A DNA stretch of 64,000 bases from Macrostomum hystrix (GCA_950097015.1 CATNEN010000039.1:1178001-1242000), one strand, 5' to 3'; shown: positions 11,376 to 43,593, numbered from the stretch's first letter. Program-made: numbers and translations. Notes: generated from the sequence alone by a model not told the origin.

Positions 11376-13738
11376 GGCGGCGGCCACCCCTGCCCTCCCC
11401 CCTGCATTTGCATCTTTGCCCCACAGACCAAGTAATATAACTAGACTGCGCATGCGGGTGTTCCCCACACTAAGGGGTGCGTGTCTTGTTTGTCATAGAG
11501 GAAATGGCACCCTCAGTTTTCCTTCCCCCCCGATCGATAATGGAACAGTGGGATAGTGGCAGCTCGCGGCCGCCGGCTAGCCGACACTTCCACTAGTCAA
11601 AAAATACTCGGCTAGCCGGGTGAATCCATGTGGACCCACGGGGGGGTAGGGGGTAGGGGGTAGACGTCCGATAAATTTTACATGGATCATGCTACTCGTC
11701 TACTGCAAGTAGAAAGTATGAAATATGAAGTATGTAACTGGCTATCTAAATATTTTTCCTTTGCACTGATAATCATTTATTTCCAAACATATAGGCAAGC
11801 AAACCACAGTTCATACTAATTAATACAATACAACTAAAGCTGAATGAGTTTAGATGGGACTTACTGATTAAGTGGATTTTACGTGTAATAGATATATGAC
11901 GCTTTTCTATCGTGCTAAGTAAGAACCAAGAAGTGATCACCCCGTCTCAAACAAATGATACTTCCACCTTAACAGCGAGGGCTTAATGGCTTATCAGAAG
12001 CCAGAACTAAAATTACAACACATCCACTGTATAAAATGGCTATAAAACGAAATAATTAGTAAATATTTAGCATCACAATAAAATATCGGATCAAAAAAAT
12101 TCATTAGTAAAAATAATACGGAAAAAATTCGAACCCCCCTCGTAACACTCAAACAGAGCGCTCTTTCTATCAACACGCCACACAGGTTGAGTTATACATG
12201 CATAGAAAGACATATTTATACTAGTTATAAGACAAAAACAAAATCAAATCATATTTATTTTAATTTTAAATTACTCATATTTATATAACTTGGTTGCTAG
12301 ATTATATTGGCTTCATTTTTGACGGCAGTTAATTGAAAAATTAAATTAAAGCTGTTTTACCCAGCTCTCCAACCCGTAAAATAGGCTTTTCATTCTACCC
12401 AGAATTCCAGAACCAGAATCAGTTCTAAAATTCCAGAAAGTATAGCGGTATAACTCTACAGTGCCTTAAAAGAAACGAAACAGAAACAAGTAAGACTGAT
12501 TATGTACTCGTAATTATTTATGACAATGATCCGAATAAGGTATTAGCAAAAAATAGCTCGCTGTGGGTCTAGTGTCACTAAATGATGTGCCATTGCCCGC
12601 AGTCCTTCTGCAATCATTCTCAATATAATTGTATTCATTTGTCTATAGAATTCGTCACTTTTTTAGTGTTACATGGGAAGAAAGAATTGTATTTTTATAA
12701 ATACTCTTTTTACATGTCAAAAACGAGTCTGAATAGTCCGGATTTTACGTCAATTTCATAACTTTACGTGCGTATGGTATAACAAATAATTATACAGAAC
12801 TAAGTATGCGCATTAAAAAAAGTGTATTAGTACTTCTCAAAAAAAGATTTTCTTAGTTACGTTGTAGTATAATTTTTTATTTAAGTTTTTATTTAATAGT
12901 TTAGAATTGTTTAAATAAAAAACGCGCCCTAATGCGCTGCGCCACCAAACTAGTTTAGTTGGCATTTTACACTTAGGATATCATTACATCCATAACAGAT
13001 TGTACTTTACTGTGTCTAGAGAAGGTATTTTTTAAAGTTACTTTGTCAATTTAAGTATTGAAATTTTCTATTAATTTTTTTATAACAAAGGTAAGCAATG
13101 TTTTTTCGTTTTAAATTTAGTTACTAGTACTACTTATGCCAGCAAATCGAAATCCCAATCCAATTGTTTTGATTTTCAACATTTATTAACTGACACAATG
13201 AAAATGTTACATGTAAAGTTAATAATAGATGTTAGTTAAAACCTAAGACTAAACTACTAAGAGTGTTACTAATGCAACTTATATCCAAATTATCAGTCAG
13301 TGGTCTGGCTGACTAGCTAAATTTTTTAAACCAAAATGATAATTGCTATAAAGTATAGACTTCAAGTTTTTAATACATTTTAACTTTGCTTGCTTTTTGG
13401 GCTTCTTGAACTTTGACTTACTAGACTTAGCTGCAGGGTGGTCCATGGACCCAGCGGGGAGGCGAGGGTCTCTTGAACTTTAGGTCTATATAAAATAGTT
13501 CTTGTTTTGATAGGATGATAAATCTGTGGCTACTAAGGCTTTTTGATGTGCTGATTTCATTTTTAATCAGATTTGTTATAGCTTTAACCCCCTACCATGC
13601 CATAGTCAGAAAAGTGGTAGAGTGCATGTCAAAACAATTTTTTGCTCCTCCCAAAATTGTACAACGTTACTACCTGCCTTGCAACAATAATAATTAATAT
13701 ACCTGGCATAAATAATGTGGTGTGGAATTTTTCATAAT

Positions 13739-14222
13739 GGCAGTGCTTATCCCCATGGTACTGTAGAAATAATTTTTGTCTTTTTCCTATGGTACCGTGG
13801 GAATAATTTCCTGCTTATCCGCACGGCACACTGATAAGATAGCTGTCCTAATCATCTATCTTTTTATCGTGACTGCAATTTTTTTTTCTTCCGGTTTTTA
13901 AAAGCAAGTAAACAAATAAAAGTTTTCTGCTTTTTTCGCAATTAGTTAACCAATACGGTGGCTTTTTAAGTATAATATATAAATATTGCTATTATTTATA
14001 TATTTAAAAGAATACAACTGAAGTGTGTATTTTTCTAATCTTATAGCTCAAGCCTTCTAAGCCTATAATCCAGTCTATTACTTTACGCATCTCTGGAGCT
14101 ATGTTGAAGATAGGACAGCTATCTCGTCAGTGTGCCGTGCAGATAAGCAGGAAATTATTCCCACTGTACTGTAGGAATAAGACAAAAATTATTTCTACGG
14201 TACCGTGGGGATAAGCACTGCC
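13739..14222. mobile_element. Mutator-type MITE (copy A)
   Basis: ~110-bp TIRs GGCAGTGCTTATCCCC...; 9-bp TSD TTTCATAAT. Confidence 0.92.
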
Positions 14223-14912
14223 TTTCATAATTGTCTTTGGCCATAACCAGCTCGGCAGCATCCAAAGAGCAGAAAGAATCGCAGCTACATTTCTAACCTT
14301 TATTAGTGACTTCAATCAGGCAATATTTCCAAGCTTCCAACTTCCAAGCATTCTGTAGCATTTTTTACTAGATTTGTCACTATATACCCTGTGGCTATAT
14401 AACAGCCAAGTAAACTAAACTAAACTGAACTGAACTGAATTGAACTGAATTGTTACGAATACTATAAACTGAATTGTTTCTGCACTGCACTTTTTGTTTC
14501 ATTTAGCGCAATTTTAAATTTATTCATAAAAATAATTTTGCAAACAAAAGTAAATTTATGCCATGCGCTTGTACACCTTTTTATAGAACAGCAACCCTTT
14601 TGTGACATAATATTCTCACTAGGCCCTACCCCTATAATATTTTTATATTATTATGGTACAGGCATACATAATACAAGAGTTACAAGATGAAATAAGATTA
14701 TTATGGTCAGTACTGATTATATTATAAGAAATTGAGATTATCAAACCAAAAAAAGAAACAAAGGAAATTTAAATTTAAATTAACTCAAATTTTAAAGCAT
14801 AAAGTAGGCACTAAAGCTTCGTATTTCAGTTTGAGTCTTAAATTAAAGTGCATAAGAAATAGTGCAATAAAATGGTTTTATTTTGTAATTCTAATTTTTT
14901 TCTTACACACAG

Positions 14913-16164
14913 ATGGTTCTAACTGGTGCCAATGTGTTTTTGCAAAACAAAGGAAAGGCAGGTAAGTTTTCTTATGGTCAGTATTACTTAAAAATATACT
15001 ACAGGGATATATAGTAAGACTAGAACTCAAGAAATAGTAATGTATGAGTAGGCAGCATTATTTTTAATACAAAACATTTTAGTCCATTTATGCAGCATAA
15101 CATTGTTTTTTTCTAAAAGTCTTGAATATTGTTGTATTTTCTAGGCTACATCATATGTTATATTCTCTGTGGGGTGCATCTATTAATTTACATAAAAGCT
15201 AGAAATAAATAAATATAATAATTAGTCACTATGTTTTGGTAAAATTTAAAAATTCAAATCTTCCTTTAATTCTAGTGTGGACCGCCGAACTGCGTCGCGA
15301 GTATATGAGTCTGCCAATCGAAGAAAAGCGACGTCTTCAAGAAGAAGCTAAAAATCAGCAGAAGAAAATAAGAAAAGTGGTAAATGATTTAAAACGTACA
15401 GGTGAGACATACGTACTTATTATATTAACCCGACGTGGAACCGATTTTACCACGTCCAATGACATATCGCCTAATGTTAGAAGCGCTATGGAGCCCCATA
15501 TAAATAAAATAGCAGAACTAATGGATGACGCGAAAAAAGCAGAACAACAAAATATGGCAAATGAGCGCAGTGATGTTCAGCTTGCTGAAACTAGTCAGCC
15601 ACGAAACCTAGCTTCTGTTTATAGCGATGTGAAAAAAATGCGACAAGAAATTTTTTAAGGGCTAAAATTGCACATAAAACAGCGACAGGTTTCGACGGCA
15701 AGATTCCATGGAGCCTTGTCGGAAAAAGTTGCAAATTCATTCCAGAATTGAAGGACCCCCATCACTTATCCAGAGAAAAATGTGTAGCCATTTTAAAGGA
15801 ACTCGAAAATACAGAACTGACATTTTGTAATTCAGTTTCCATTGATGTATCACCTGATCATGATACACCAATAAGTGCCTCTCATCTGCATCAACAACAG
15901 GCTCAAGTGATGGAAGAAGGGCTACAAGTCGATGACTACCATAATATCACCACAAGTGACTTGGAGAGTGAAGGAGATACGGCACTGACTTCTGTAACCG
16001 CGAAATATCGGCAACACTTTCACGAAAGTGAAAGTTCAACAAATTTTAATCCTTTCAATACTCCATTTGTAGATGACGCAAATAGACTTGCTCAGTCATC
16101 TTTATATGGGGCGAGCTCTGCACCCAACATTACGCTTAGACTAGATACTAGACAAACGGAATGA
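14913..16164 (+). pseudogene. Transposon accessory gene with HMG-box-like N-terminus (exons 14913-14961, 15276-16164; one frameshift at T-run 15651-15656)
   Basis: GT-AG intron keeps frame, giving MVLTGANVFLQNKGKAVWTAELRREYMSLPIEEKRRLQEEAK; after one indel the frame continues KIPW...KDPHHLS to the stop at 16164. Confidence 0.6.
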
Positions 16165-16337
16165 AATTTTAATATGAAACAATTATTAGAGGCCCACACG
16201 ACGCCAATAGCTTAATATTAGATAGTATAATATTTAAGATGCAATATGCTATGGTTTTCAATGTTTTCAGCCGAAAATAGTCACTGTGCAGAGAGCTGCT
16301 ATCTTTACAGGGACTAGAGTCTATATTCTGTCAAATA

Positions 16338-17190
16338 TTGCTGGGATTGTCAATGTGCATTTATTGCTTTGACATTTTTCCTCTGCTTAAAACTAATGCT
16401 GGGATTGTCACTGTGCATTCATTGCTTTGACATTTTTCCTCTGCATAAAACTAATGCTGGGATTGTCAATGTGCATTCATTGCTTTGACATTTTTCCCTC
16501 TGCATAAAACTAATGCTGGGATTGTCAATGGGCATTCATTGCTTTGACATTTTTCCCTCTGCATAAAACTAATGCTGGGATTGTCACTGTGCATTCATTG
16601 CTTTGACATTTTTCCCTCTGCAAAAAACTAATGCTGGGATTGTCAATGTGCATTTATTGCTTTGACATTTTTCCTCTGCATAAAACTAATGCTGGGATTG
16701 TCAATGTGCATTCATTGCTTTGACATTTTTCCCTCTGCATAAAACTAATGCTGGGATTGTCAATGTGCATTCATTGCTTTGACATTTTTCCCTCTGCATA
16801 AAACTAATGCTGGGATTGTCACTGGGCATTCATTGCTTTGACATTTTTCCCTCTGCATAAAACTAATGCTGGGATTGTCACTGTGCATTCATTGCTTTGA
16901 CATTTTTCCCTCTGCATAAAACTAATGCTGGGATTGTCAATGGGCATTCATTGCTTTGACATTTTTCCTCTGCATAAAACTAATGCTGGGATTGTCACTG
17001 TGCATTCATTGCTTTGACATTTTTCCTCTGCATAAAACTAATGCTGGGATTGTCAATGGGCATTCATTGCTTTGACATTTTCCCTCTGCATTTGTCAGAT
17101 AAATTTTTCTTTCACGAACGTGACGCGCCTCATCGTGGCGTGAAAGTGAACAGTGCGCGTTTCAATCTTTTGCACTTGCCAAGACGTCAC
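16338..17190 (+). repeat. 58-59 bp tandem array (~13 copies) plus ~100-bp unique block; inverted copy at 30049-30961
   Basis: TGCTGGGATTGTCAATGTGCATTCATTGCTTTGAC... units; unique block ends GACGTCAC. Confidence 0.95.
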
Positions 17191-17670
17191 ATAGAATTGA
17201 TAATATGATGCTGCTGACTCATAGAATTGATAATATGATGCTGCTGACTTATAGAATTGATAATATGATGCTGCTGTCACATAGAATTGATAATATCATG
17301 CTGCTGACTTATAGAATTGATAATATGATGCTGCTGTCACATAGAATTGATAATATGATGCTGCTGACACATAGAATTGATAATATGATGCTGCTGTCAC
17401 ATAGAATTAATAATATGATGCTGCTGACTTATAGAATTGATAATATGATGATGCTGACACATAGAATTGATAATATGATGCTGCTGTCACATAGAATTGA
17501 TAATATGATGCTGCTGACACATAGAATTGATAATATGATGCTGCTGTCACATAGAATTGATAATATGATGCTGCTGACTTATAGAATTGATAATATGATG
17601 TTGCTAACTTATAGAATTGATAATATGATGCTGCTGTCACATAGAATTGATGAGGTGATGTTGCTGATGG
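17191..17670. repeat. 30-bp minisatellite (ATAGAATTGATAATATGATGCTGCTGTCAC)
   Basis: About 16 tandem copies; related inverted copies at ~20229-20350 and ~21500-21560. Confidence 0.95.
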
Positions 17671-17680
17671 TGTGATCCAG

Positions 17681-18528
17681 TTGAGCCTCTGCGCCTTAAG
17701 TATCGACCGAAGCCGCGCAGTCCGAACCACATATACAAATTGTCGCTAAGTTGTCGCTACCTGCTCTCGGATGAGCTAACCTACGCGGATTGCCAACTCA
17801 TGCCTAAACTGCATCATCTGAAAATGGCCGCTAAGGTAGAATTCCCTGTTTGTCTGCCAGGGTTCGAATGCTTTTTTAATCTCAGAGTCTATTTAGCTCC
17901 AGCGGGCTAAAGATAGATTCTAAAATGAATGCGGGTCGGTATTGACTGTGAAATCAGATAGGAAAGAGATGAGACAGGATAAAGATGAGACAGGCGAGAG
18001 ATGTGACATGGAAGATGTAAGACACGGCACAGTTTTATACAGAGGAGAGATAAGACGGGAGATAAAACAGGGAAGATATGAGACAGTGAAGACATGAATC
18101 AGGGCCAAGATGCATGTGACAGTGTTCAGATTAGACAGAGGAGAGATGAGACAGGGGTGAGGTGAGATCGGAGAGACGAGACAGGGGTGAGGTGAGATCG
18201 GAGAGATGAGACGTCTTGGGTGAGATCAGAGAGATGAGACAGGCGTGATTCAATTGTTCGCATCGTCGATACATTTCAGTTCTATCGCGACTTCGATGTG
18301 CCATCAGAGCTGCAGCATCTGCAAGCCTATTATTCGGCCATGTACGAATGCGAGGCCTTCCGTTGTAGCTGTCCGGCCGACCGTGACGTCTATCAGTTGT
18401 ACCACGACAAGCTGCCTCGCGCATTGGTTGCTAAGAGACCGCAGCCCAGCCTGATGGACGACTCGCGGCTGTTGCTAGGCGAGAGCGGCACCGGTGGCAT
18501 TGGCAACAATGGTGCCGGCGTACATTGA
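17681..18528 (+). pseudogene. CLIC: 3' fragment of a chloride intracellular channel (CLIC) gene, two exons (17681-17835, 18280-18528)
   Basis: RYLLSDELTYADCQLMPKLHHLKMAAK | FYRDFDVPSELQHLQAYYSAMYECEAFRCSCPADRDV matches invertebrate CLIC C-terminal motifs; phase-0 GT-AG intron; no N-terminal exons seen. Confidence 0.8.
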
Positions 18529-18828
18529 TGGGCTAACATTTATTTAGGTAGAAAATTAGGCAAGTTTTGTTCGTTTTTCTCTAGCGAAAATGCGACAGCT
18601 GCTTTTTAATTTTTTTAGTTTTTTTATGGTAAAAATGACTTTAAACGATTAATAATTTTAGTTTTTACTAATACTAATTCGGGTGTATCTCCGTACTCAG
18701 TAAGATAAAAACTGCGATTTTTGTCGCCGCTTGCTTGTCTGTAAACTACAATGCCTATAAGTACTTATACATTCATCCTTTGCGTGTGTTTTTCTGAACT
18801 AAAAGCATTCGATTTTTTATAAATATTA

Positions 18829-19110
18829 CGAGGGGTGTCCCAAAAGTTCCCGGAATGTCCAACGTTGCTCTTCAACGGAGCCATGAAATTTCACGCCCAT
18901 GGTGTCAAATGAAAGGAAATTTTGTCAGAAAGAAAACAAAATTAAAATCATGTTCATATCTTTTTCTATTCAGGAGCTGCAGCAAGAAACGTGCGCGAAG
19001 GTCAGGGGTAGTGTTACACAAGCTCAAAAATCTATGAAAATGATTTTAAACAATAAAACACAGAACAGTTCGTTCACACTTTCCATAGACACTGCCACGT
19101 CTTTCTGACA
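18829..19110 (+). mobile_element. Tc1/mariner-like left end
   Basis: TA followed by CGAGGGGTGTCCCAAAAG, a mariner-type TIR start; right boundary not defined. Confidence 0.45.
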
Positions 19111-19682
19111 CGTCAGTAGCAGTGCCAGTATCAGTATCAGTATCAGTAGCACTAATTCAAAATGGAAATATCCAAAAATGGAGATGAAAAATGATTGCCA
19201 TAAATTTTGGAGCTTGTGTTAGTGCTCCGAAAGTTATTTTACTAAGCTCCACGAATGTAATTAAGTATGAGCATATATGTTTACAATGTCTCGCTAATTA
19301 AATTCTATGCCAAATTAAATTCCCGTTCTTTTTTTTAACGTGCAAAGCTTTCTACAAAAATATAGTTAGCTAGTACAAACCTTTATTAATTAATATAAAA
19401 TTGTTATTCAGATATAGTGCACTGTTATTTTAATACTTTCTTATAGATATTGCAGTAGTAAAATACAAAAAACGTACCGTTCTTGTATTGTGTTAATGTT
19501 AGTTAGCTCTACTAATGCTCTGTTTTGTTATTTACTTATCGCTGCTCATCATATGCTCATTTTATTCCATTCAAATAAAGCAACAATTAGAAAAAAATTG
19601 TTGTTTGCTTCAATCATTTTGTGTAGTAAACAGCTGAGATAAGCTACAAAATTCCTACTCAATGAGCTTGTAACATTGGTTA

Positions 19683-19868
19683 GGGCCGGGTGAGTGGCAA
19701 ATCGGTCTAACGCGTTGGCCTCTCGCACCGAGGTCCCTGAGCTCGATTCCGCGGCGAGGCCACATTCATTTTGAACGCAGCCGCGGAGAGAAGACTTAGG
19801 GGCACAGCGATAGTGTACACTGCCAGACGATGAGAAAGTCGGGCCCTATAAGCCCTATCTTATTACTG
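19683..19868 (+). mobile_element. tRNA-derived SINE
   Basis: A-box-like GTGGCAAATCGG and B-box-like GCTCGATTCC in a tRNA-like head, followed by a non-tRNA body. Confidence 0.6.
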
Positions 19869-19956
19869 ACGAATTTCCATAATTATTTCGATATCGACTG
19901 CCTCTCTAAAAACATATTTGTTGAAATTAGTAAAATATTCTACTTTTGTTTTCCAG

Positions 19957-20200
19957 CCCGCCAGCCAGTTCGGCGATGTGGACCTCGGAGGGAAAGTACG
20001 TAGTGTCAACGAGCATCCAGTCTGGTAGATCAGTCACTGACTGGCTGACTGCTGACTGACTGCTGCTGCAGCATCATAGAAGCAACTATGATGCTTCTCT
20101 AGAAATCATCATAGTTGCTTTGTTTCACGTGTTAAGACTTGGCAGCCGAATATTCGTCATTGACAATGACATCGAGCCGGTGCGCCAGCGGGAGTGCTTT
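19957..20200 (+). pseudogene. Deleted methyltransferase-family fragment
   Basis: GSRIFVIDNDIEPVRQRECF (20142-20200) aligns to GQVFVMDNDIRSVQQLENF; same upstream acceptor context as 20578-20626. Confidence 0.6.
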
Positions 20201-20626
20201 AGTAAAATTGTTTGAAACCCGTTAAACATTATCAATTCTATGAGTAAGCAGCATCACCTTATCAATTCTATTAGTAAGCAGCATCACCTTATCAATTTTA
20301 TTAGTAAGCAGCATCACCTTATCAATTCTATTAGTAAGCAGCCTCGCTTATCCTCTGTGTTTTTTTAAGCAATATGACTTCTTAATTAATTATTATATAA
20401 TTAAGCCGGGTTAATCTCAATGTGTTTGATGTGTTTGTCTCCTATTTTCATTATTTTGCCTTTTCATACTCAGATAGAAATTCATGGCATAGACTCAGAT
20501 CTCATTGGCCTAGATAGGATAGACTCAGGTGCTGTAGAGACTCAGATTCCATAGCCTGTGCTCACAAAATATATTTTAAAAACATTTTTGTTGAAATTAG
20601 TAAAATATTCTACTTTTGTTTTCCAG

Positions 20627-21402
20627 TCAGTCAGGCGACAAAGGAAACTTAGGGTTCTACCAATCTAGTGAATTTAGGGCCGCATACACAGTGTGCGAGC
20701 TCCCGAAGAAGCGGTTGTCCATTCGCCAGCTGATTCAAGCTGAGCTCTATGACGCCATCATGGGCTCAAACACCAGCAGCACCAGCTATGAGGTCCTGTC
20801 ACTCGGCTGCGGCCCAGGCAGCGACCTTCTTGCCGCCATGGACGTGTTCCAGCTGGTGGCCAAGTCAGAGGGTCTGGGACCACTTCAGATGGGCGTCACC
20901 GGTGTCGACATGTTTGATTGGCTGCTCTAGCCATTCCATGAGGCAGCCGCAGCGTTAGCTCTGCAGTGGCTAATCAGCAGCTTCCCGGAGCAGTTTCACC
21001 TGGGCCACAGCCAGGGACAACTAAAACCCAAAGAAAAGTCTATAAGTCATGTCAGGTGCGCATCCGTTAACTTAATTTAATCTTGGTTTGTAGTTTGTAT
21101 TTTATATATTATTGAAACGTTCGTTATAAATATGTTTGTTATAAATAAGTATATAAGGAATTGGCCCACGATGGAATGTCCCTGATTTTACTTCTCTGCT
21201 CTATTTATTTATTATTTATTAATTTTATTTATTAAAAAACTTAAATATATTTTTCATAATTTTCAATTTTTTATTACTAACTAGCAGACTACGGAGACTA
21301 CGTGGGACTACGGATGTTGCTACGACCTTATCCTGCTGAGCTATGCCGAGGTGCGGCTCTAAGACAAGTTTCGTCACCGACTGGCTGCCGCAGCTGCTAA
21401 AA
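20627..21402 (+). pseudogene. Divergent, apparently intron-containing paralog of the SAM-methyltransferase gene; stops and frameshifts
   Basis: FYQSSEFRAAYT...EVLSLGCGPGSDLL...TGVDMFDW; downstream piece YDLILLSYAE...DWLPQLLK matches FDIISVSFVD...LPQMLSK. Confidence 0.8.
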
Positions 21403-22132: not shown

Positions 22133-24085
22133 GGGGGTACATTTACGGATTCATCAGTGGTTACACTGAGTTGAATATATACTGCTTATAGTTGACTATC
22201 TGAACTGTTGAAGTGGGGGTACATTTACGGATTCATCAGTGGTTACACTGAGTTGAATATATACTGCTTATAGTTGACTATCTGAACTGTTGAAGTGAGG
22301 GTACATTTACGGATTCATCAGTGGTTACACTGAGTTGAATATATACGGCTTATAGTTGACTATCTGAACTGTTGAAGTGGGGGTACATTTACGGATTCAT
22401 CAGTGGTTACACTGAGTTGAATATATACGGCTTATAGTTGACTATCTGAACTGTTGAAGTGGGGGTACATTTACGGATTCATCAGTGGTTACACTGAGTT
22501 GAATATATACTGCTTATAGTTGACTATCTGAACTGTTGAAGTGAGGGTACATTTACGGATTCATCAGTGGTTACACTGAGTTGAATATATACGGCTTATA
22601 GTTGACTATCTGAACTGTTGAAGTGGGGGTACATTTACGGATTCATCAGTGGTTACACTGAGTTGAATATATACGGCTTATAGTTGACTATCTGAACTGT
22701 TGAAGTGGGGGTACATTTACGGATTCATCAGTGGTTACACTGAGTTGAATATATACTGCTTATAGTTGACTATCTGAACTGTTGAAGTGGGGGTACATTT
22801 ACGGATTCATCAGTGGTTACACTGAGTTGAATATATACGGCTTATAGTTGACTATCTGAACTGTTGAAGTGAGGGTACATTTACGGATTCATCAGTGGTT
22901 ACACTGAGTTGAATATATACGGCTTATAGTTGACTATCTGAACTGTTGAAGTGGGGGTACATTTACGGATTCATCAGTGGTTACACTGAGTTGAATATAT
23001 ACTGCTTATAGTTGACTATCTGAACTGTTGAAGTGGGGGTACATTTACGGATTCATCAGTGGTTACACTGAGTTGAATATATACTGCTTATAGTTGACTA
23101 TCTGAACTGTTGAAGTTAGGGTACATTTACGGATTCATCAGTGGTTACACTGAGTTGAATATATACTGCTTATAGTTGACTATCTGAACTGTTGAAGTGG
23201 GGGTACATTTACGGATTCATCAGTGGTTACACTGAGTTGAATATATACTGCTTATAGTTGACTATCTGAACTGTTGAAGTTAGGGTACATTTACGGATTC
23301 ATCAGTGGTTACACTGAGTTGAATATATACTGCTTATAGTTGACTATCTGAACTGTTGAAGTGGGGGTACATTTACGGATTCATCAGTGGTTACACTGAG
23401 TTGAATATATACTGCTTATAGTTGACTATCTGAACTGTTGAAGTGGGGGTACATTTACGGATTCATCAGTGGTTACACTGAGTTGAATATATACGGCTTA
23501 TAGTTGACTATCTGAACTGTTGAAGTGGGGGTACATTTACGGATTCATCAGTGGTTACACTGAGTTGAATATATACTGCTTATAGTTGACTATCTGAACT
23601 GTTGAAGTGGGGGTACATTTACGGATTCATCAGTGGTTACACTGAGTTGAATATATACGGCTTATAGTTGACTATCTGAACTGTTGAAGTGGGGGTACAT
23701 TTACGGATTCATCAGTGGTTACACTGAGTTGAATATATACGGCTTATAGTTGACTATCTGAACTGTTGAAGTGAGGGTACATTTACGGATTCATCAGTGG
23801 TTACACTGAGTTGAATATATACGGCTTATAGTTGACTATCTGGACTGTTGAAGTGGGGGTACATTTACGGATTCATCAGTGGTTACACTGAGTTGAATAT
23901 ATACTGCTTATAGTTGACTATCTGGACTGTTGAAGTGGGGGTACATTTACGGATTCATCAGTGGTTACACTGAGTTGAATATATACGGCTTATAGTTGAC
24001 CATCTGAACTGTTGAAGCGGGGGTACATTTACGGATTCATCAGAGGTTACACTGAGTTGAATACATACTGCTTAAATTCGACTAT
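22133..24085. repeat. 82-bp tandem satellite, ~24 copies
   Basis: GGGGTACATTTACGGATTCATCAGTGG... period 82. Confidence 0.97.
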
Positions 24086-24190
24086 CATGACAATTAATTT
24101 ACACTTGCACTTCAGGAAACAGAGTTCTGACAATGGGGCTTTTGGCGTTAAATTCGTATCAGATTGAGATGAGAAATCCACTTCTATACT

Positions 24191-27100
24191 CCCTAGAAAA
24201 AAAAACAAGCTAAACTTTGTAAGTACTTACAAAGTAAACAATCAAAAGTCGTGACAAGTACCACCCAAGTGTACTAGGATGTTTTCATGGTTGACTTAGA
24301 AAGTAACCAAAGTTTGTTGCCATGACTTACAAAGTTTACCATGTTTGACTGCCATGTACTTAGGTTGACTTGTAAAGTATATATTGTTTTCGTAAGACGA
24401 CTTACAAAGTATGCAAAGTAGACGTTGCATATACCTAGATGACTTACAAAGTATGCAAAGTAGACGATGCATATACCTAGATGACTTACAAAGTATGCAA
24501 AGTAGACGATGCATATACCTAGATGACTTACAAAGTATGCAAAGTAGACGTTGCATGTACCTAGATGACTTACAAAGTATGCAAAGTAGACGTTGCATGT
24601 TACCTAGTTGACTTACAAAGTATGCAAAGTAGACGATGTATATACCTAGATGACTTACAAAGTATTCGTTACATTAGTTGGCTTACATTTGGCACATCAC
24701 TGACGGAGCCCAGTAAAACTGCATTACAAGCAATTCTAAATAAAATAAGAAAATGTAGACCGGATAATTTTTCTGCTAGAAACGCAAAAGCTCGTGTTAT
24801 CGAGAATGGAAGCAAAAAATACTTTATAACACATGATCGTCCTTATTCCAAAACTGTGTAACCTTTATTGAAAAAATTATGTTCAGAATGTGGCAGAAGT
24901 TCTGCGGACAACTATCTATCTATCCAGGCACAAGCTAACAGCTGCTGTTGACAAGTTGACAACTGACAACGCCAGGGACACCCAATTGCACAGGAAGCGA
25001 ATAAGCAAAGAAAAGAAAATTGATATGAAGCATGTTGCACAGCATTTAATAGCAACAACAGAACCAACATAATTGTTAGTTAGCTTGATAGTCGATTTCA
25101 CATCAAGATTTCTAAGGTCGCAATTGCGCAAGCTAGCTGGCAACAGATGGGATACAGATGACAATGTTGAGTAGGACTTATCTTCTTGAAAATATAATAA
25201 AACATATGAAACCATTGATGATTGCACTTCTGGTCTTCGGTCAAGAACCTTCTTGGTTCTTTTTGGCTCTTGCATTTCCTCAGAGACACTGAAATATAAG
25301 AAAATTAATTAGCCTGTTAAAATAAGTCCCATAACAAAGTAAACAAAATATTTGCATTACTCATTAGCTAAACATGAAATATATATAACAAATTCATTGC
25401 CCTTGGCCTAACTTTGAATTGTTTCTGCATACCAAAATTTGTTTTTATGCTATAATTGTAATAGGAAAATAGAGTTAGGACCTACATTCTATTATGGATA
25501 TAGTTTGATAATTAATATATGTAATAATAAACAGATTAAACAATTAAACAATTATACATAGCACTGAAGCCTTGTGTTTCAATATAATAGGTAGTAATGA
25601 GCAATCCAATATAATATAGCACCAAACATGTTATTGTGGATATAGATGCCACTAGAGGAATTCCTCCAGATGACTCTCAAAGAGATCTGGGTAGGTCCCA
25701 TGCATCTGGCAAAACTTGGCCTTTACATGTGCCCAGGTTCATTCTATAGGTTTCATTTAGGCCCCCTTGAGGCTTCATTATCTAACTCTTTAATTTGGTG
25801 TCTATCCAGCACAACTTCTAGAACCAAAATATACTTTATAGTTTGCACAAGTTACATAAATAACTTATGAATTTAGTGTTGTCTCTGGCACAACTTCAGG
25901 AACCAAAGAAAGACTTTTAAAGTTGCTACTTTTCATCTAAGAGTCATTAGAATTATTTAAAAATGAAAAAATATTAATGCAAATGAAACTTCACAATTGC
26001 CTAAAGTAGATATGACATTTATATCAAGGATAGATTTAAAGAGGGAGATACAAATGGTATCATCTTCCTAGCTAAGTTTTAATATTTTATAAAAAAGTAT
26101 TTAATGACAATATAATACATTATACTAAGACAAAGCATCATCATAAATATAAACATTATAATTTATAATTTATTTCTAATTGAGAAACTTATGAATTATA
26201 GGCCTACTATAGGGCTTCTATCTACCAAAGAAATTTTTAGACCACAAGAAAAATTTACTGGATCTACACCTATGTGACATTTATCATTTGCAATTTACAT
26301 TATATAATATAATATAGGCCTAGGTCTATCCAATTTCAGAATGTGAATTTCAATGTCCAAATCACCAAATGCATTTTCCCAGTAATAAGCAAGCTAAAAT
26401 CACAAAATCAGGTTGTGCATTTGCATCATAGGTTCAATTCCAGGATGCATAAGCTCTATTCCATAGTTGTATTAGTTGGCATATAAGCACTGAGCACTCT
26501 AGACTAATCACACAAAAAGCACTGACTGGCTGACAACTAGGCCTAATTATTTAAAGACTGAGGCAAAACTTAGAACTTAGACTTAGAGACATAGGGCGAA
26601 CCATTATGAAAAAAATCATTGGGGTCTAACGAATTATCGCATGTCACACAATTCTTAGTACGCTGGACAGCCGGCGTTGACATTGACATGCACCTAGCTC
26701 TCACAGGTCATACAAAACTAAAAGCGACAACACAACATGGCAATTCAGGCAATAGAGCAAGTAGACTTTGAAAGTAGAATTTGGCTCGTGCAAAAGGAGG
26801 CCATCAAAGGACTCAAGGAGTCAGTGCCAGTAAACCGGTAGTAGGCATTAGCAAGCCATTGAGGTATTGTTATTGTTATTGGCATCTATCAAGGAAGGAA
26901 TCAACTTATAGTTATAAATCAAGACTTCACTTGGTCTTGGTTGTGAAAGCGAAAACTTTTTTAAAAAGGGAAGAGGAACAAGTAACACGCGAATTAACAA
27001 ACTCCTATCTACGTTTTCTAAATTGCAGTCGCTACAAATGGAAAAAAACTGTTCCAAAACAAAGCACGTTTTGTTCTCTGTAAAACCTTATAGCTTAAAA

Positions 27101-28745
27101 AAGCATTTAACAATTTGATTTATTGTCGCTATGTCAACCGAAAGTTCGTCATTTTAAGCGTAACTTTTTGCCAAATAAATTGCTTAACTAAAATGTAACT
27201 ATAAAATTATACGTCAAGCCAGAAGAATGAGAATACTTGTTCTGGAACTTTTTAGTGCAATGATTGTGTTCATTCATATCTAACTATGGCTTCAAATCAT
27301 TTTCTGAACATAAAAAGAGCATTTCGAATTTTTTGACGTATCTGTGACCCTATTTGCCTAAATGTTATGCGAGAAAATGCATGTAGTGACTTTTAGGTAC
27401 AAAATTTCGTTATAATTCATGCAACAATGTGGGAAATTATATGGTAACAATGTGGTATTGCCATTGTACGTATACAGTACATGTTCCAGTAAGCTGTTTA
27501 TGGTATGGTCCACCTGTTTTAACTTTCAAAGTACATGTACATGTAGTAGACGTAGACACCGACATTGTATGCTCTGTAAGCACTACAAAGTAGATGGCAT
27601 GCGTCTACTTTGGATACTCTGAAAGTCAATCAAGTAGACACCGACATTTACTTTGTAAGTGCTACAAAGTATATGACATGCATCTACTTTGGATACTTTG
27701 AAAGTCAAACCAAGTATAGTATAGTAGACACACCGAAATTATATATTTTGTAAGTACTACAAAGTAGATGGCATGCGTCTACTTTGGATACTTTGAAAGT
27801 CAAACCAAGTATAGTATAGTAGACACACCGACATTGTATATTTTGTAAGTACTACAAAGTAGATGGCATGCGTCTACTTTGGATACTTTGAAAGTCAACC
27901 AAGTATAGTATAGTAGACACCGACATTGTATACTTTGTAAGTACTACAAAGTAGATGGCATGCGTCTACTTTGGATACTTTGAAAGTCAACCAAGTAGAC
28001 ACCAACATTTACTTTGTAAGTACTACAAAGTATATGACATGCATCTACTTTGGATACTTTGAAAGTCAAACCAAGTATAGTATAGTAGACACACCGACAT
28101 TGTATATTTTGTAAGTACTACAAAGTAGATGGCATGCGTCTACTTTGGATACTTTGAAAGTCAACCAAGTATAGTATAGTAGACACCGACATTGTATACT
28201 TTGTAAGTACTACAAAGTAGATGGCATGCGTCTACTTTGGATACTTTGAAAGTCAACCAAGTAGACACCAACATTTACTTTGTAAGTACTACAAAGTATA
28301 TGACATGCATCTACTTTGGATACTTTGAAAGTCAAACCAAGTATAGTATAGTAGACACACCGACATTGTATATTTTGTAAGTACTACAAAGTAGATGACA
28401 TGCGTCTACTTTGGATACTTTGAAAGTCAACCAAGTATAGTATAGTAGACACCGACATTGTATACTTTGTAAGTACTACAAAGTAGATGGCATGCGTCTA
28501 CTTTGGATACTTTGAAAGTCAACCAAGTAGACACCAACATTGTATACTTGGCAAGTAACTTTAAAAGTACGCATGGAAGTCTACTTTGTAAACTTTGCAA
28601 GTCAAAGTAAGTAGGGCAGAAACATTGCATACTTTATAAGTACTTGATTGCAACATGCTATGTACTTGGTAAACTTTATAAGTCAACTATGTCATGAAAG
28701 TACCATGATTGACTTACAAAGTTTAGCATGTTTTTTTTTTTAGGG
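24191..28745. mobile_element. Non-autonomous CMC/EnSpm-like element
   Basis: TIRs CCCTA(G)AAAAAAAAACA(A/T)GCTAAACTTTGTAAGT; 2-bp TSD CT; subterminal arrays with GACTTACAAAGT/ACTTTGTAAGT (42-bp units 24400-24662; ~73-85-bp units 27545-28560). Confidence 0.85.
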
Positions 28746-30048: not shown

Positions 30049-30961
30049 GTGACGTCTTGGCCAGTGCAAAAGATTGAAACGCGCACTGTTCACTTTCACG
30101 CCACGATGAGGCGCGTCACGTTCGTGAAAGAAAAATTTATCTGACAAATGCAGAGGGAAAATGTCAAAGCAATGAATGCACATTGACAATCCCAGCATTA
30201 GTTTTATGCAGAGGGAAAATGTCAAAGCAATGAATGCACATTGACAATCCCAGCATTAGTTTTATGCAGAGGGAAAATGTCAAAGCAATGAATGCCCATT
30301 GACAATCCCAGCATTAGTTTTATGCAGAGGGAAAATGTCAAAGCAATGAATGCACAGTGACAATCCCAGCATTAGTTTTATGCAGAGGGAAAAATGTCAA
30401 AGCAATGAATGCACAGTGACAATCCCAGCATTAGTTTTATGCAGAGGAAAAATGTCAAAGCAATGAATGCCCATTGACAATCCCAGCATTAGTTTTATGC
30501 AGAGGGAAAAATGTCAAAGCAATGAATGCACATTGACAATCCCAGCATTAGTTTTATGCAGAGGGAAAAATGTCAAAGCAATGAATGCACAGTGACAATC
30601 CCAGCATTAGTTTTATGCAGAGGGAAAAATGTCAAAGCAATGAATGCCCATTGACAATCCCAGCATTAGTTTTATGCAGAGGGAAAAATGTCAAAGCAAT
30701 GAATGCCCATTGACAATCCCAGCATTAGTTTTATGCAGAGGGAAAAATGTCAAAGCAATGAATGCCCATTGACAATCCCAGCATTAGTTTTATGCAGAGG
30801 GAAAAATGTCAAAGCAATGAATGCCCATTGACAATCCCAGCATTAGTTTTTTGCAGAGGGAAAAATGTCAAAGCAATGAATGCACATTGACAATCCCAGC
30901 ATTAGTTTTTTGCAGAGGGAAAAATGTCAAAGCAATGAATGCACATTGACAGTCCCAGCAT
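30049..30961 (-). repeat. Inverted copy of 16338-17190 (unique block plus ~14 x 58-59 bp)
   Basis: Reverse complement match; I see only one difference in the unique block. Confidence 0.95.
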
Positions 30962-31062
30962 TTTTTTGTGTCAGATAGCAGATACTTAATAGTTAAGTGT
31001 TGCATTTTGACTTAAATATTATGAGACTTTTTGGTTTGATGCACTTAGCTGCTAATATATAT

Positions 31063-33744
31063 TTAACACGCGGTCTCGTCATCATCAGAATCATCTGATG
31101 CTGAATTGAATGAGTTATCTAGATCGTCCAGTCGTTCGTTAGAATCATTTTTGTCTAAACTGTCAACCGTGGGAGTTAAACTTTGGATTGAGTCTTGGTT
31201 GACTGAGAGCATTGCTATAGGGACACTTTCAATTTGCCGGTAAATAATCTGAAACAGTCGGTGAAAGTGTGCCGGTAGACCTGGTTGACCTTCTAAAGTT
31301 ATACAATGCTCTTGAATACGCTTCTGAATATCACGCCATTCATCAAAAAGAAAGTTTTTTTCCTCATCAAGCCTCTATTTTTTATGACTTACGTCAATGG
31401 CGCGTCTACGAAAGCTTCCTGTAAAATCGTTTTTAGCAATTCCGGAATAGAAGCTATGCTTAGGGTTTTGAAGTTCTGTAAAAGTTGGTCTATCGTTTTG
31501 TGGCATCTATTTGGAATAGAGTTTCTGCATTTCCGAAGTTAGACTAAAAACTCTACGAGCACAACTTTTTGTTCGACTTTGACCTGTGGAAGTACCAAGT
31601 TCTCTAAGCCAATATATTCTTTGAGTGGCAACTGACCTTAAAGAGCCCAGCGTATCTTCTTCAAGAGAGGCGTGACCCGAAATTGATTCCATATGCCATT
31701 GCTGGCCTAAGACCAGAATCTGCTCATCCGATACGTCAAAGCGAGTGTCAATACAACCAGAATTTTTTAAGACAGCCATTTCATGCATTAGAGCTTGAAT
31801 TTCGTTTTTTATTGCTGTAGAGGTAGTTGTAATCAATTTCAACCTTTGCGCAAACCACACATGTGCATTTAAAAGTTGTTGAGCATTGAAATTGTGTAAA
31901 ATATGGGATATGGACATTGTCCTCCGATCATTCCGCATGTACTTAAAAAACTTTCCATACGGTCTTAAGGCAGCCCAGGCTCGTTCAGAATGCTCACCGT
32001 CACACAAGCCAGCTCCCGGAGTAACGCGTACGGATAAATTCAGCTGACAGCTAGTTTTATGTCCAAGGACGTGAAACGCATTAACAGCACACATGCTGCT
32101 ATGGACATCAGCCCCGGACTGTGCAACGATAGACTTGACCCGATTGGAGACACGACAACCTGAAATTGAAACGATTTCGAGTATATTCGAGCAAGAAAAC
32201 ATTTTATGCCACTTTCAATATTTTTTGGAAAACTGTTAAAAATATTTTGCACGAAGTATGAATTATAATGATATGATTTAAACTGTACGCATGTTAAATC
32301 GGATTACTCACCAACGTCATAAATAAACAGTAGATGCTTTGACACTGGCGTCGTTTTTAAATAATGAAGCAGGCATTCCTCTGGATAGCAAAGACGCTCT
32401 CCTGGAGTATTTATATTACACCCTGTCACAAGCCTATTGTGTCTGCAGAACAGACCAAAGAATCCATAGACGTTGTTCCGTGAGGCACCTCTCGAGGTCT
32501 CTTTAGTTGTACTACCAGCTCTCCAGTTAGGACAACTGTCAGGCTCAGGATGATGGACAGTAGAACCTTGTTGAGAATTTCCATCTACGTAAATAAGAGG
32601 TTCAGGCAAAATACGACCATCACCTGGTAAATCCTTCTGCTTTCCACCCGACGCTGCAAATTGCTGCCAACCGAAGAGACCATCACCACATAGAACAGTC
32701 TTGCGTTTAGAGTTTTTTTCTGGGCAACTTAGGCATGTTTTTGGCCAACATGAATTATGGTTTTGCAACTCGCGAAAGCGCAAAAGTACACCGTACCGCT
32801 GAATACGTTGGTAGACACTCTTCGCTAAGTCTGGACTCCAGCAACCTTGTCCCACGACTGTGCCCTTAAAGAATGAGTGAATTGCTCTATGCATAGGCAA
32901 CTGTCCATCCATGCACATTGAATCAAGAAGTGAAAGGAAACTAAATGAAAAAAAAGTTAAACATTCGCCATCTGATGAAGCCGTTGCTGGGAAGTAGCCC
33001 TGAGACAGCAAAGCACAACAGGTGTCGCATGCTGCACATGTAAAAACTTTTGCCTGGACGCTTCCGGTTATGTTAATTAACTGCACGTTGCTCGCTGCAT
33101 TAAATACTTTGCCTCTCGCACAGTCATTACAGCAGTAAAGTTTTGGAAAAGATATGGCTGCCCCGGAAGTTTCCTCACTAAACATCAGTAGATCGATCTG
33201 CGGGAGGAAGTTACATTTTAGTTTACATTTTTGATTGGCATAGATTGCTAAAATTGCTGTTGAGATCTTTTTTTCTTGTTTCGTTTAAAAAAGTGCACTT
33301 ATGAGCTAAAGATCACTAAATATATGTAGGTTTGCTTACATTCCAGAGTAGAAATTTATGAGCAACGAAATCTCCATGAGTTACTTCCTTGCAGTCAGCA
33401 CATAGATCCACGTTACAGGTTATACAGCGAAAAATACCTTGGTTTTCTCGGCAGCGTATGCACTGGCTCAAAATAAATGACTTCCGATAACTCGGTGAAC
33501 AATTTTCAACAAATGAATCATAATTTTCCCACTCGATAAAGCAATCGGACGAACTTTCAAAGTCGAAATCTGCTTCTTGAAAAACAGAACTGGACGTGCC
33601 AGAAGTGTTTTGAACTGCAGATTTAGCACTATGTTGATTCCAACAGTCTTTACCGGCAGAGTATTTTGTTGATCTTGGTCGTCCACGCAGGCCAGAAACG
33701 TAAGTTACCTTGCGTGTTTTCTTCAGGGTTTTAAAACGGTACAT
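31063..33744 (-). pseudogene. KDZ (Kyakuja-Dileera-Zisupton) transposase with B-box-like and CxC domains; exons 33744-33340, 33197-32312, 32159-31063
   Basis: LLSQGYFPAT (CxC), VLCGDG, CRH...GE..YP, spliced YDVG|C, FH..GH...CQ, GAGLCDGEHSERAW; GT-AG introns keep frame; in-frame TAGs at 31507 and ~31375. Confidence 0.88.
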
Positions 33745-34517: not shown

Positions 34518-35477
34518 ATCTGGTGACCGGCAATGAAACCTGGATACCGCACTTTGACCCTGAGACCAAGCAGAAAGCAAGGTGTGGGCGTTGAAGGGTT
34601 CAGATCCACCTGTGAAAGCGAAGCGAGACCAGCACTGCAAGAAGATCATGCTGACCCTTTTCTTCGATCAAGAAGGTTGACCTGACCCTTCTGGGTCTAA
34701 CCCTGACCATCGACTTCCTTGGGCCTAACAGCACGGTTAACTCGGACCGGTACACGGAGACGCTGACTAAGATGAAATCAGACATCCGCAACAAGCGCAG
34801 GGCTGCGATGAAGCCTCACCTCCTGTTGCACGACAACGCTCGACCTCACACGGCCAAGAAAACGCTTGATCGTATCAACGAACTCAATTTTGATCTGCTT
34901 GCGCACCCACCCTACTCACCAGACTTAGCTCCTTGCGACTACGCAATTTTCCCTCAGTTAAAGAAGCACCTGCGGGGGCGCATCTTTGACCATCGCGACA
35001 ACTTGGAAGGTGAATTCAGGCGGGTTCTGCTGCACGAAATTCCGCGTCGAGCTTATGCAGATGCCATCAATGCGCTTCTCACGCGATGGACTAAGTGCTG
35101 CGAGCTAAGGGGGACTTCGTCGAAAAGTCGTCAGTCGACGGCGATGGCGATGCTGCCAGGGGTTAGCGATATGGGCGGCACCGGCCGCCTCCTCGCTGCG
35201 TCTGTCATGGAGGCTCCCTGCCGCTAAGTCAAAGAAGTAGGTCAGCAATGGCGATGCTGCGTGACCGATTCCGCTGGCCTTGACTTGGTGTAACTCTACC
35301 CCTTACCCCTTGTTCTAATTTTAGCTAAAACTTTTTAATGAGTTGACATATTTACTTGATTTAAAAAGCATTAGAACTGCTGGATGTTTATATATCAGTG
35401 ACGTAAGTTTCAATAAACTATGTTGCACCAGTTTGCCTGTGCATCGATTTTTCCCGCTATTTCTGGGACACCCTACG
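34518..35477 (+). mobile_element. 5'-truncated mariner element (DD34D-type transposase fragment plus right TIR)
   Basis: LVTGNETWIPHFDPETK, LHDNARPHTA, HPPYSPDLAPCDY; end ...GGGACACCCTACG followed by TA. Confidence 0.88.
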
Positions 35478-35721
35478 TATAAAAACAAATATTTCAGAAA
35501 CGACTTTGAAAATTTTCGTCTTTACTTCCATGGATTTCCTTCCAATTTCAATGAGGTGAATATAATTTAACACATATTTTGTTAGCATGTTGCAGTAAAT
35601 TTTTAGACTACATGATAAAATTCTGTAAATTTCATTGCATTTTCTTATTTTAGAACAATGTCAAATGTCTGTTAGAGCAATTGGAATCCCATCGGATGTT
35701 CGCATAATCAGGCCGCTAACA

Positions 35722-35869
35722 GCAGCGACCTTCTTGCCGCCATGGACGTGTTCCAGCTGGTGGCCAAGTCAGAGGGTCTGGGACCACTTCAGATGGGCGT
35801 CACCGGTGTCGACATGTTTGATTTGCTGCTCCAACCATTCCATGAGGCAGCCGCAGCAATAGCTCTGCA
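35722..35869 (+). pseudogene. Second copy of methyltransferase fragment (duplicate of ~20818-20965)
   Basis: Near-identical text gcagcgaccttcttgccgccatgg...agctctgca. Confidence 0.85.
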
Positions 35870-38358: not shown

Positions 38359-39291
38359 CCAGCCAGTATAATAACATTTTTTCCCTTCACTTCTATCAAG
38401 TCCGTGTAGATTGTTGAGTAGCGCTGAATCCTCGCATGCGGAAGGTCCCTAGCTCGATTACCAATTACATTTGATTTTTGTAATTGACGAAATAAAACTT
38501 ATCACTTTTTGTCATTTATTCTTTTCATTCCTCCTTTCTATTGATCTGTCATCTATTTCATTTCTAAAATGCATATAATATGCCTGTGTTGTATTATAGT
38601 TCTTGCCGTTCTAGCCAAAAAGATATAATTCATTATGCAAGAGTTTTCCATATACGAAATTCGTTCGCCACTGCTTCGAGTTCTTTCGAGTTCTAGGGAC
38701 AAGTTTGGTTTCTTTTGAAAAATGGCTTTGTCATGTATGTATCTCATGTATCTCATTGAGCTACTTAGTCGAAGTTATTCTACACTACGCCGTAAAAATG
38801 GCTTCCCTATATGTTTGGAAATGTCTAGAAATGGCTAGTGTTATGGCCAGCCAGTATAATAATATTTTTTCCCTTCACTTGTATTAAGTCTGTGTAGATT
38901 GTTGAGTAGCGCTGAATCCTCGCATGCGGAAGGTCCCTAGCTCGATTACCAACCACTACTGATTTTTGTAATTGACGAAATAAAACTTTTTCACTTTTTG
39001 TCATTTTTTCTTTTCATTCCTCCTTTCTATTAATCTGTCATCTATTTCATTTCTAAAATGCATATATGCCTGTGTTGTATATAGTTCTTGCCGTTCTAGC
39101 CAAAAAGCTATAATTCATTATGCAAGAGTTTTCCATATCGAGTTCTTTGAGTTCTAGGGACAAGGATTCTAGTTTGGTTTCTTTTGAAAAATGGCCTTGT
39201 CATGTATGTATCTCATGTATCTCATTGAGCTACTTAGTCGAAGTTATTCTACACTACGCCGTAAAAATGGCTTCCCTATATGTTTGGAAAT
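38359..39291. repeat. Tandem duplication of a ~490-bp unit containing a tRNA/SINE-like head
   Basis: 38359-38846 repeated at 38847-39291. Confidence 0.85.
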
Positions 39292-39614
39292 AAGTTATTT
39301 ATATAGTTTCTTACTACATGCACGTGGGTTAGGAATGCAATTCCCCCAAGGCCACCGCCAGTAAGGCTAGCCCCCCGTGGGTCCACGTGGAATCACCCGG
39401 CTAGCCGAGTATTTTTTGACTAGTGGAAGTGTCGGCTAGCCGGCGGCCGTTAGATGATAGTGGGGTGCCCTGGTCCCCACGCAGTTCTTCTGACTAAAAT
39501 CTCATCAAGCACACATGGTTGAACTGACTGCTAAGTACAAATGAAATATATATATGGTTGATGAATTAAGAAAACTGATGAATGTGTAGCGAAAAATAAT
39601 TCAATCAGCATACC

Positions 39615-43534: not shown

Positions 43535-43593
43535 TTAAATATTATTGCTGGCTTGTTTCAGAACAAACGAGGAACTTGCTTATTCAAGAAAGC

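Follow-up and report, generated by a model that had tools for sequence, protein, structure and literature searches.

To our knowledge, animals seldom harbor DNA transposons of very large size. In the Kyakuja-Dileera-Zisupton (KDZ) superfamily, Zisupton and Dileera elements make 8-bp target-site duplications, while Kyakuja elements make 7-bp duplications, have CA..TG termini and are reported to lack terminal inverted repeats (TIRs) (Kojima 2025, PMC12730594). The Cryptococcus elements KDZ1-3, which belong to the Dileera clade, are 9-11 kb long with 8-bp duplications and 236-bp TIRs, and their mobility has been directly observed (PMC11343200). In Ectocarpus, KDZ families reach up to 30.3 kb, carry nested insertions that are fixed among copies and often have pseudogenized transposases (PMC12477816); Chlamydomonas has an active KDZ element of 31.7 kb (as cited in PMC12477816). 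Here we describe a stretch of 64,000 nucleotides (the window; G000:C39:1178001-1242000, within a 220-Mb assembly) and propose, with a probability of roughly 85%, that its positions 11560-39456 are one copy of a young, multi-copy and recently mobile family of giant KDZ DNA transposons in a Macrostomum-like flatworm. The element belongs to the KDZ superfamily by its Pfam domain, its catalytic motifs, its TIRs and target-site duplications, and the 13 copies in which these ends recur.

The ends of the element and the P element that it interrupts

The giant element covers 27,897 bp (window 11560-39456), has a G+C content of 31-45% against 45-52% in its surroundings, and interrupts a P element. The features of its ends and of the insertion site are the following.

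11421-11559, plus strand: left 139 bp of the struck P element, the remainder of which resumes at 39457
11553-11559, no strand: left target-site duplication ATAGTGG, 7 bp, single in an uninterrupted P-element copy
11560-11649, plus strand: left 90-bp TIR, consisting of the tip CAGCTCG and an 83-nt core
38359-39291, plus strand: two direct subterminal repeats of ~466 bp, 90.6% alike
39367-39456, minus strand: right 90-bp TIR, with the tip CATCTAA in reverse complement
39457-39463, no strand: right target-site duplication ATAGTGG, 7 bp
39600-39956: P-element THAP domain (E 4e-21)
40380-41252: P-element helix-turn-helix, RNase H-like (Tnp_P) and GTP-binding insertion domains (E 1e-17, 2.5e-38 and 6e-11, respectively)

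The 83-nt TIR cores (11567-11649 versus 39449-39367) are 96% identical to each other, and the left core is 100% identical across 10 genomic copies. The outer 7 nt, CAGCTCG on the left and CATCTAA on the right in reverse complement, are invariant among all copies of the respective end, which makes them the imperfect tips of a TIR of 90 bp and not sequence from which the repeat is inset. The original prediction, made from the sequence of the window, had recognized inverted repeats of ~80 bp but placed them inward of the ends; the repeats are real, and they reach the tips of the element. In all genomic copies the termini read 5'-CAGCT...AGATG-3', i.e., they are CA..TG ends. Each TIR carries the 10-bp palindrome CGGCTAGCCG twice, 35 bp apart, giving four occurrences in the window where 0.01 would be expected by chance.

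The target-site duplication is perfect at 7 bp, and the eighth base, G, is the element's own last base. A duplication of 8 bp fits the window locus only, by coincidence with this terminal G, and fails in every other copy. The 8-nt direct repeat, the right end at 39455 and the Zisupton-like label with its 8-nt duplications, all part of the original prediction, consequently give way to a 7-bp ATAGTGG, an end at 39456, and a family whose full-length copies, 13 of 13, share CA..TG termini and a duplication length of 7 bp. By contrast, the prediction that the block splits a P element was correct: the inserted DNA divides an element with THAP and Tnp_P domains, and the two flanks are joined, with one ATAGTGG, in an uninterrupted P-element copy at G000:C34:4886644-4887016, which is 97-99% identical to the interrupted one and represents the empty site. 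Many other loci have just the ~39-bp P-element terminal sequence (window 11421-11459) in common with the struck element.

A family of near-identical giant copies

A genome-wide search with the TIR core gave 38 matches, from which 13 inward-facing pairs, 22.3-32.0 kb apart and located on 10 contigs, could be assembled. All 13 of these full-length copies are flanked by perfect 7-bp duplications, each with a different sequence, and no clear consensus was seen among the 13 duplications. Viewed in the orientation of the element, ~8 of 12 insertion sites have a run of at least four C or G at a distance of 8-15 bp on the right-hand side of the duplication, in a sample too small for a motif. The family also includes two short end pairs (4-5 kb) and several solo ends. 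The short pairs (G000:C8:3599275-3604245 and C38:27980658-27984705) are probably deletion derivatives, and for the C8 pair a matching 7-bp duplication was not found. The 13 copies sum to ~335 kb, or 0.15% of the genome.

Seven copies (that of the window and six more) were compared over their whole length; the other six, the short derivatives, the second family and the C11 and C41 loci described below were judged from search matches. The seven are colinear and 98.3-99.8% identical throughout, and the differences between them lie in satellite copy number and in private nested insertions. Thus, one copy on C38 has a 6.2-kb insertion of its own, and the C34 copy has a private 0.6-kb segment and a 0.1-kb gap. 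The expectation that the ends would recur genome-wide as paired copies was borne out, with distinct 7-bp duplications throughout and a shared cargo in the seven copies compared.

A KDZ transposase predicted to be spliced from three exons

On the minus strand, the element encodes a transposase for which homology suggests three exons.

33340-33744, minus strand: exon 1, with the ATG at 33744, a basic GRPR stretch and a B-box-like zinc finger
32312-33197, minus strand: exon 2, open in the window copy, with the putative CxC cysteine cluster and the first half of the KDZ domain
31063-32159, minus strand: exon 3, with the second half of the KDZ domain and the C-terminal tail; two in-frame TAG codons in the window copy

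The exon model comprises ~794 codons, both of its introns (33339-33198 and 32311-32160) have GT-AG boundaries, and the ATG at 33744 is immediately preceded by a TTTCAG acceptor. The gene was searched exon by exon, not as a joined protein. Pfam KDZ (PF18758) was recognized with 60.3 bits in the exon 3 piece and 27.4 bits in the exon 2 piece (cut-off 26.6), with profile position 125 as the point where the two pieces join. Upstream, the match to CxC1 is weak (E 0.0016-0.0021; 18.6-19 bits, under the cut-off of 26.9). Full-length relatives of the transposase score 110-169 bits for KDZ, and those from lancelet and fish pass both CxC1 and CxC2. The minus-strand KDZ transposase of the original prediction, there described as a spliced CxC-KDZ gene, is thereby recovered, with the KDZ domain split over two blocks and a CxC1 signal that is faint. 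The same prediction had placed a giant KDZ transposon in an animal genome, and this holds, given the KDZ domain and 13 copies with TIRs and duplications.

When the exon 3 piece was used as a HMMER query against 1.84 billion representatives, 185 relatives were found at E <= 0.001. The best are proteins of 777-830 amino acids from Macrostomum lignano, followed by lancelet, fish and fungal proteins; the nearest named relatives come from Macrostomum, Branchiostoma, Astyanax and Tilletia. Macrostomum lignano proteins of 808-830 amino acids align to the blocks 33732-33340, 33194-32310 and 32196-31171 at 35-54% identity, the closest being 49-54% identical to the transposase. Twelve proteins of flatworm, lancelet, fish and fungal origin share without variation the motifs D, YD, CRH, GE, FH..GH..CQ and GL.DGE..ER. 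The window copy has all of them: D201, CRH, GE and YD fall in exon 2, and exon 3 holds FH..GH..CQ and GL.DGE..ER.

We also analyzed the condition of the gene in the 12 transposase-bearing copies by six-frame genome searches with each exon. Exon 2 is open only in the window copy and in the copy at C38:26.28 Mb, and both carry the two exon 3 stops: a TAG at ~31509-31507, within a 3-nt insertion, and a TAG at 31377-31375, both of them downstream of the catalytic core. Exon 3 is open in the copies on C34, C11 and C33, at C1:24.46 Mb and in copy A on C7, all of which have T9 for T8 near 32956 in exon 2.

A second gene shared with a second KDZ family

Convergent with the transposase lies a second gene, which we call open reading frame 2 (ORF2).

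15209-16161, plus strand: ORF2, accessory gene convergent with the transposase, 318 codons, first ATG at 15302

Six copies keep all 318 codons of the frame open, and copy B on C7 has an open frame of 305 codons; in the window copy the frame is broken near 15650 by a 1-nt shortfall (T6 for T7). A convergent HMG-like gene had been predicted here. The convergent plus-strand gene exists, but its HMG identity found no support, since Pfam, sequences of solved structures and Foldseek were all empty. No HMG box or other domain was recognized in ORF2 by Pfam, by a homologous-protein search, among solved-structure sequences or in the Atlas, and Foldseek returned no match to its single-sequence AlphaFold model, itself of low confidence (predicted local distance difference test score 50). 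Likewise, neither an HMG box nor a TET/JBP gene was found among 105 reading frames of at least 55 amino acids, and a three-frame reading of the sequence upstream of ORF2 revealed nothing obvious. Pfam gave no match to a GTF2I repeat in ORF2, the sole trace of which is a low-scoring Atlas neighbor (0.75) with PF02946; a search by part was empty.

A genome search did recover paralogs of ORF2, which are 30% identical to it and have open frames of ~394 amino acids. Eleven of 15 are situated 9-26 kb from, and convergent with, KDZ transposases of a second family, which are 45-51% identical to the transposase of the window family and are present in at least 14 copies, mostly with open frames. Sites of this second family include C7:10980412-11005182, C25:9642241-9666734, C26:1253968-1278174 and many on C1. 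It is probably another giant two-gene KDZ family and is possibly still autonomous. Since the two-gene layout with a long core occurs in two diverged families, ORF2 is to be regarded as a gene of the element and not as cargo; it is probably a DNA-binding helper.

Host gene fragments carried as fixed passengers

Pieces of host-type genes are present between the TIRs, as had been predicted, with similarity to CLIC proteins (17668-17907) and to methyltransferases (20631-20921 and 20093-20203).

17668-17907, plus strand: CLIC-like fragment the size of a single exon, with a match to residues ~163-213 of solved CLIC chains (E 8e-5)
20093-20921, plus strand: two scrambled methyltransferase-family fragments with a 30-bp array in between
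35722-35869, plus strand: 148-bp duplicate of part of the methyltransferase fragment, 96.6% identical to 20818-20965

Outside the family, the nearest protein match to the CLIC-like piece is at C11:6208461-6208622 (72% amino acid identity). For the methyltransferase pieces, 20093-20203 resembles residues 217-253 and 20631-20921 residues 57-164, which include motif I; the nearest host gene, at C41:768935-769231, is 93% identical at the amino acid level and has an open frame of 248 amino acids, versus 108 codons in the element. Two paralogs in the window itself (2515-3975 and 43459-44775) exceed 430 codons. An intact methyltransferase cargo gene was considered and rejected, as the pieces are out of order and the frame of 108 codons compares with 248-439 in the host paralogs. 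The host genes form an intronless multigene family with a long Q/E/R-rich tail and a C-terminal CCPCC motif, for which Pfam gave no recognition; two members lie in the window and about ten are clustered at G000:C41:768-832 kb. A repeat resembling a miniature inverted-repeat transposable element (MITE), at 43039-43080 and 43459-43536, is located immediately upstream of the frame at 43459 and extends over its start, so that this frame probably opens with 26 codons of repeat and not of gene.

Pack-MULE and Pack-CACTA carriers are non-autonomous and hold a varied cargo of host gene fragments. The original prediction saw the giant element in similar terms, as a Pack-type KDZ element that actively acquires and moves host DNA, in which case the cargo should vary among members. 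Several features are in keeping with such capture: the CLIC-like exon together with ~2 kb of its surroundings is similar to a host locus (contig C11 6205383-6208615 versus window ~17750-19843, 84-86% nucleotide identity in three blocks), the methyltransferase-family pieces are 93-95% similar to the C41 gene, and the 148-bp methyltransferase piece has been duplicated again into the right arm. However, the host fragments, satellites, small nested repeats and a mariner fragment are common to the seven copies compared, with the same fragments in the same places, and a 4.5-kb central stretch used as a genome query found 99-100% matches in other near-identical copies too. Such differences as exist among the compared copies are limited to satellite length and private nested insertions. 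That the passengers are the same in the compared copies implies that they are fixed and were acquired before the burst, not as variable captures. The fragments are also short and scrambled, and the element keeps its own transposase, unlike carriers of the Pack-MULE type. Capture as an ongoing activity is therefore improbable: what stands of the prediction is that host-type gene pieces are carried, in one colinear set shared by seven copies at 98.3-99.8% identity. Short, scrambled, pre-burst host pieces in an element with its own transposase match the published giant KDZ elements of Ectocarpus (PMC12477816).

The core between the two genes

The two genes are separated by a core of ~10-15 kb that is flanked by arrays of a 59-bp satellite in inverted orientation. 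Rfam and tRNA scans of the element gave no matches. The repeats and nested inserts of the core and arms are listed here.

13739-14222, no strand: nested MITE-like insert with 112-nt inverted ends (13739-13850 and 14111-14222); the same repeat occurs outside the element at ~43039-43536
16339-17091, plus strand: left 59-bp satellite array, inverted relative to 30148-30962
17188-17667, plus strand: 30-bp satellite array, with an inverted partner at 20229-20342
~18824-19071: small high-copy repeat
22133-24086, plus strand: 82-bp satellite array, variable in copy number among element copies
24191-28745, no strand: nested non-autonomous transposon of 4.55 kb, in the window copy only and not in the six other copies compared
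30148-30962, minus strand: right 59-bp satellite array, inverted partner of 16339-17091
34655-35224, plus strand: Tc1/mariner transposase fragment (DDE_3, by Pfam), a fixed nested relic

The nested transposon at 24191-28745 has 34-nt TIRs (CCCTAG...CTAGGG), an apparent 2-bp CT duplication, and 42-bp and 92-bp subterminal repeat arrays.

Because the long inverted arrays (16339-17091 and 30148-30962) bracket the core exactly between the two genes, a composite origin can be envisaged, in which a smaller KDZ element was invaded by a transposon ending in the 59-bp arrays and the 13-kb core is that second element. Yet the 4.5-kb core query gave full-length matches only inside copies of the family or beside family ends, never free, and the second, 50%-diverged KDZ family keeps the gene spacing of 9-26 kb, which fits a built-in architecture better than one accidental invasion. 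We consequently hold a composite origin to be unlikely, and favor a giant KDZ element whose long core belongs to its design.

Nested copies and mobilization in trans

The interval G000:C7:1385759-1442385 contains two giant copies head to tail, copy A of 24.6 kb and the more diverged copy B of 32 kb. At the junction between them the sequence is ...GTTAGAT|CAGCT..., and at the far end it is ...AGATG|GTTAGAT|G|GAGGCGC, with GAGGCGC also present at the left flank of copy A. These sequences show that copy B landed within the final 8 nt of copy A and generated a 7-bp duplication of its own, GTTAGAT. A circle junction was considered as a reading of the head-to-tail pair and was ruled out by this nesting and by the duplication that goes with it.

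Of the transposase gene, copy B retains just a fragment of exon 3, and neither exon 1 nor exon 2 found a match in it. Since it nevertheless inserted while lacking most of the transposase, it appears to have been moved by a transposase from elsewhere, and the sequence of this locus thus indicates mobilization in trans. The window copy is itself defective: its transposase tail holds two stops, its ORF2 is frameshifted, and the 4.55-kb nested transposon is private to it. Like copy B, it would depend on a transposase supplied in trans by another source.

Preferential insertion into one Helitron site

Three full copies (C38:10.30 Mb, C33 and C34) and two solo ends (C3:13.39 Mb and C1:6.96 Mb, the latter at C1:6960663-6961059) lie within ~45 bp of one site in a Helitron, and the five insertions are at different offsets. 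A PIF1-like helicase frame (L020:397-1446, minus strand, at the C38:10.30 Mb locus) begins ~50 bp from the target site. The Helitron family is young, with ~370 candidate copies; the 40 copies scored per search were all 99-100% identical. In the uninterrupted candidate copies, the matches to the two flanks have 8 bp in common, as a single target copy would be expected to give. A 45-bp stretch in ~400 copies amounts to ~0.01% of the genome, but it received 5 of ~15-18 insertions, for which we estimate a chance probability of <1e-10. Together, these results strongly support a preference of the giant element for one site in a high-copy Helitron.

Discussion

The genome sequence shows directly the ends of the element, its duplications and empty sites, how the copies are built, which domains they encode and that the catalytic residues are conserved, and these features identify the window element as one of a young and recently mobile family of giant KDZ transposons. 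That the copies are instead a segmental duplication or an assembly artefact carrying a KDZ gene is very improbable: satellite-rich, 99% identical copies are indeed prone to assembler errors, but this reading is contradicted by 13 loci, spread over 10 contigs, that have the same termini and differ in their perfect 7-bp duplications, and by the independent empty sites in a P element and a Helitron, and one copy is nested in the end of a sibling with its own duplication.

Some observations weigh against this interpretation or limit it. None of the 12 transposase-bearing copies has all three exons open as assembled, and hence no autonomous source has been identified. The commonest lesion is the T8/T9 homopolymer difference, which is possibly an assembly error. 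Splicing and expression are predicted from sequence and homology, from which the assembly is judged as well, and ORF2 is without any detected domain. Moreover, the ends and duplications resemble those of Kyakuja and not those of Zisupton, in an assignment of subclass that draws on duplication length and termini, not on phylogeny; the fungal Kyakuja families are reported without TIRs (PMC12730594), and the flatworm family has TIRs of 90 bp.

On the scheme that we favor, the transposase, with its basic stretch, B-box-like finger, putative CxC cluster and KDZ core, would bind the 90-bp TIRs with their CGGCTAGCCG palindromes, excise the element and paste it elsewhere by cuts staggered by 7 bp, presumably through cut-and-paste chemistry. 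ORF2, convergent with the transposase, is part of the conserved design of the element. The core and arms have gathered satellites, small transposons, the mariner relic and host pieces before the latest burst, and these are now copied along with the element.

The flatworm family shares with Kyakuja of Agaricomycotina (PMC12730594) a KDZ transposase, 7-bp duplications, CA..TG termini, large size and accessory genes. Fungal Kyakuja elements often come with a TET/JBP dioxygenase, whereas the flatworm family has the unrelated ORF2 and an animal host. Like the giant KDZ elements of algae, it measures 20-30 kb and combines fixed, unrelated nested transposons and extra genes with pseudogenized transposases that imply mobilization in trans; the algal elements belong to another kingdom, and the convergent two-gene layout, the inverted arrays around the core and the Helitron hot spot set the flatworm family apart from them. 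Zisupton, known from fish and also from nematodes, lancelets and mussels (PMC9297572, PMC12730594), is likewise an animal element of the KDZ superfamily with TIRs and a multi-exon transposase, but it makes 8-bp duplications and encodes proteins of up to ~1,400 amino acids in many exons (PMC9297572, PMC12730594), as against 7 bp and ~794 codons in three exons here. Cryptococcus KDZ1-3 are similarly large, with TIRs, extra genes without known function and a CxC1 cluster, to which the flatworm transposase has a weak match, and differ in their smaller size of 9-11 kb, 8-bp duplications, 236-bp TIRs and fungal host. Finally, in common with Pack-MULE and Pack-CACTA elements, host gene fragments lie between the TIRs and are multiplied by transposition; unlike in those carriers, the flatworm cargo is one fixed set, and the transposase and ORF2 are kept.

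Giant KDZ elements are already known from algae and fungi, and the flatworm family does not represent a new capture mechanism; of most interest are its hot spot in the Helitron and its two-gene layout, which is conserved. A broader proposal, doubtful when its parts are taken jointly, is that flatworm KDZ elements are a distinct animal lineage in which the conserved two-gene layout maintains an array-fenced core of 10-20 kb as a tolerated "loading bay", from which satellites, small transposons and pieces of host genes would be spread genome-wide; integration would favor one specific Helitron site, and the ORF2 protein might mediate this targeting.

For the KDZ superfamily, the flatworm elements add an animal family with Kyakuja-type traits to a group characterized so far mostly in fungi and algae, together with a natural case of a 32-kb copy that lacks most of its transposase and was still moved. 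The Helitron hot spot, if confirmed, would be a directly testable site preference in this superfamily. For annotation, the element accounts for several spurious "genes" in the form of CLIC-like, methyltransferase-like and mariner-like fragments. For the genome that hosts it, a single carrier of this kind can seed satellites and gene fragments across chromosomes.

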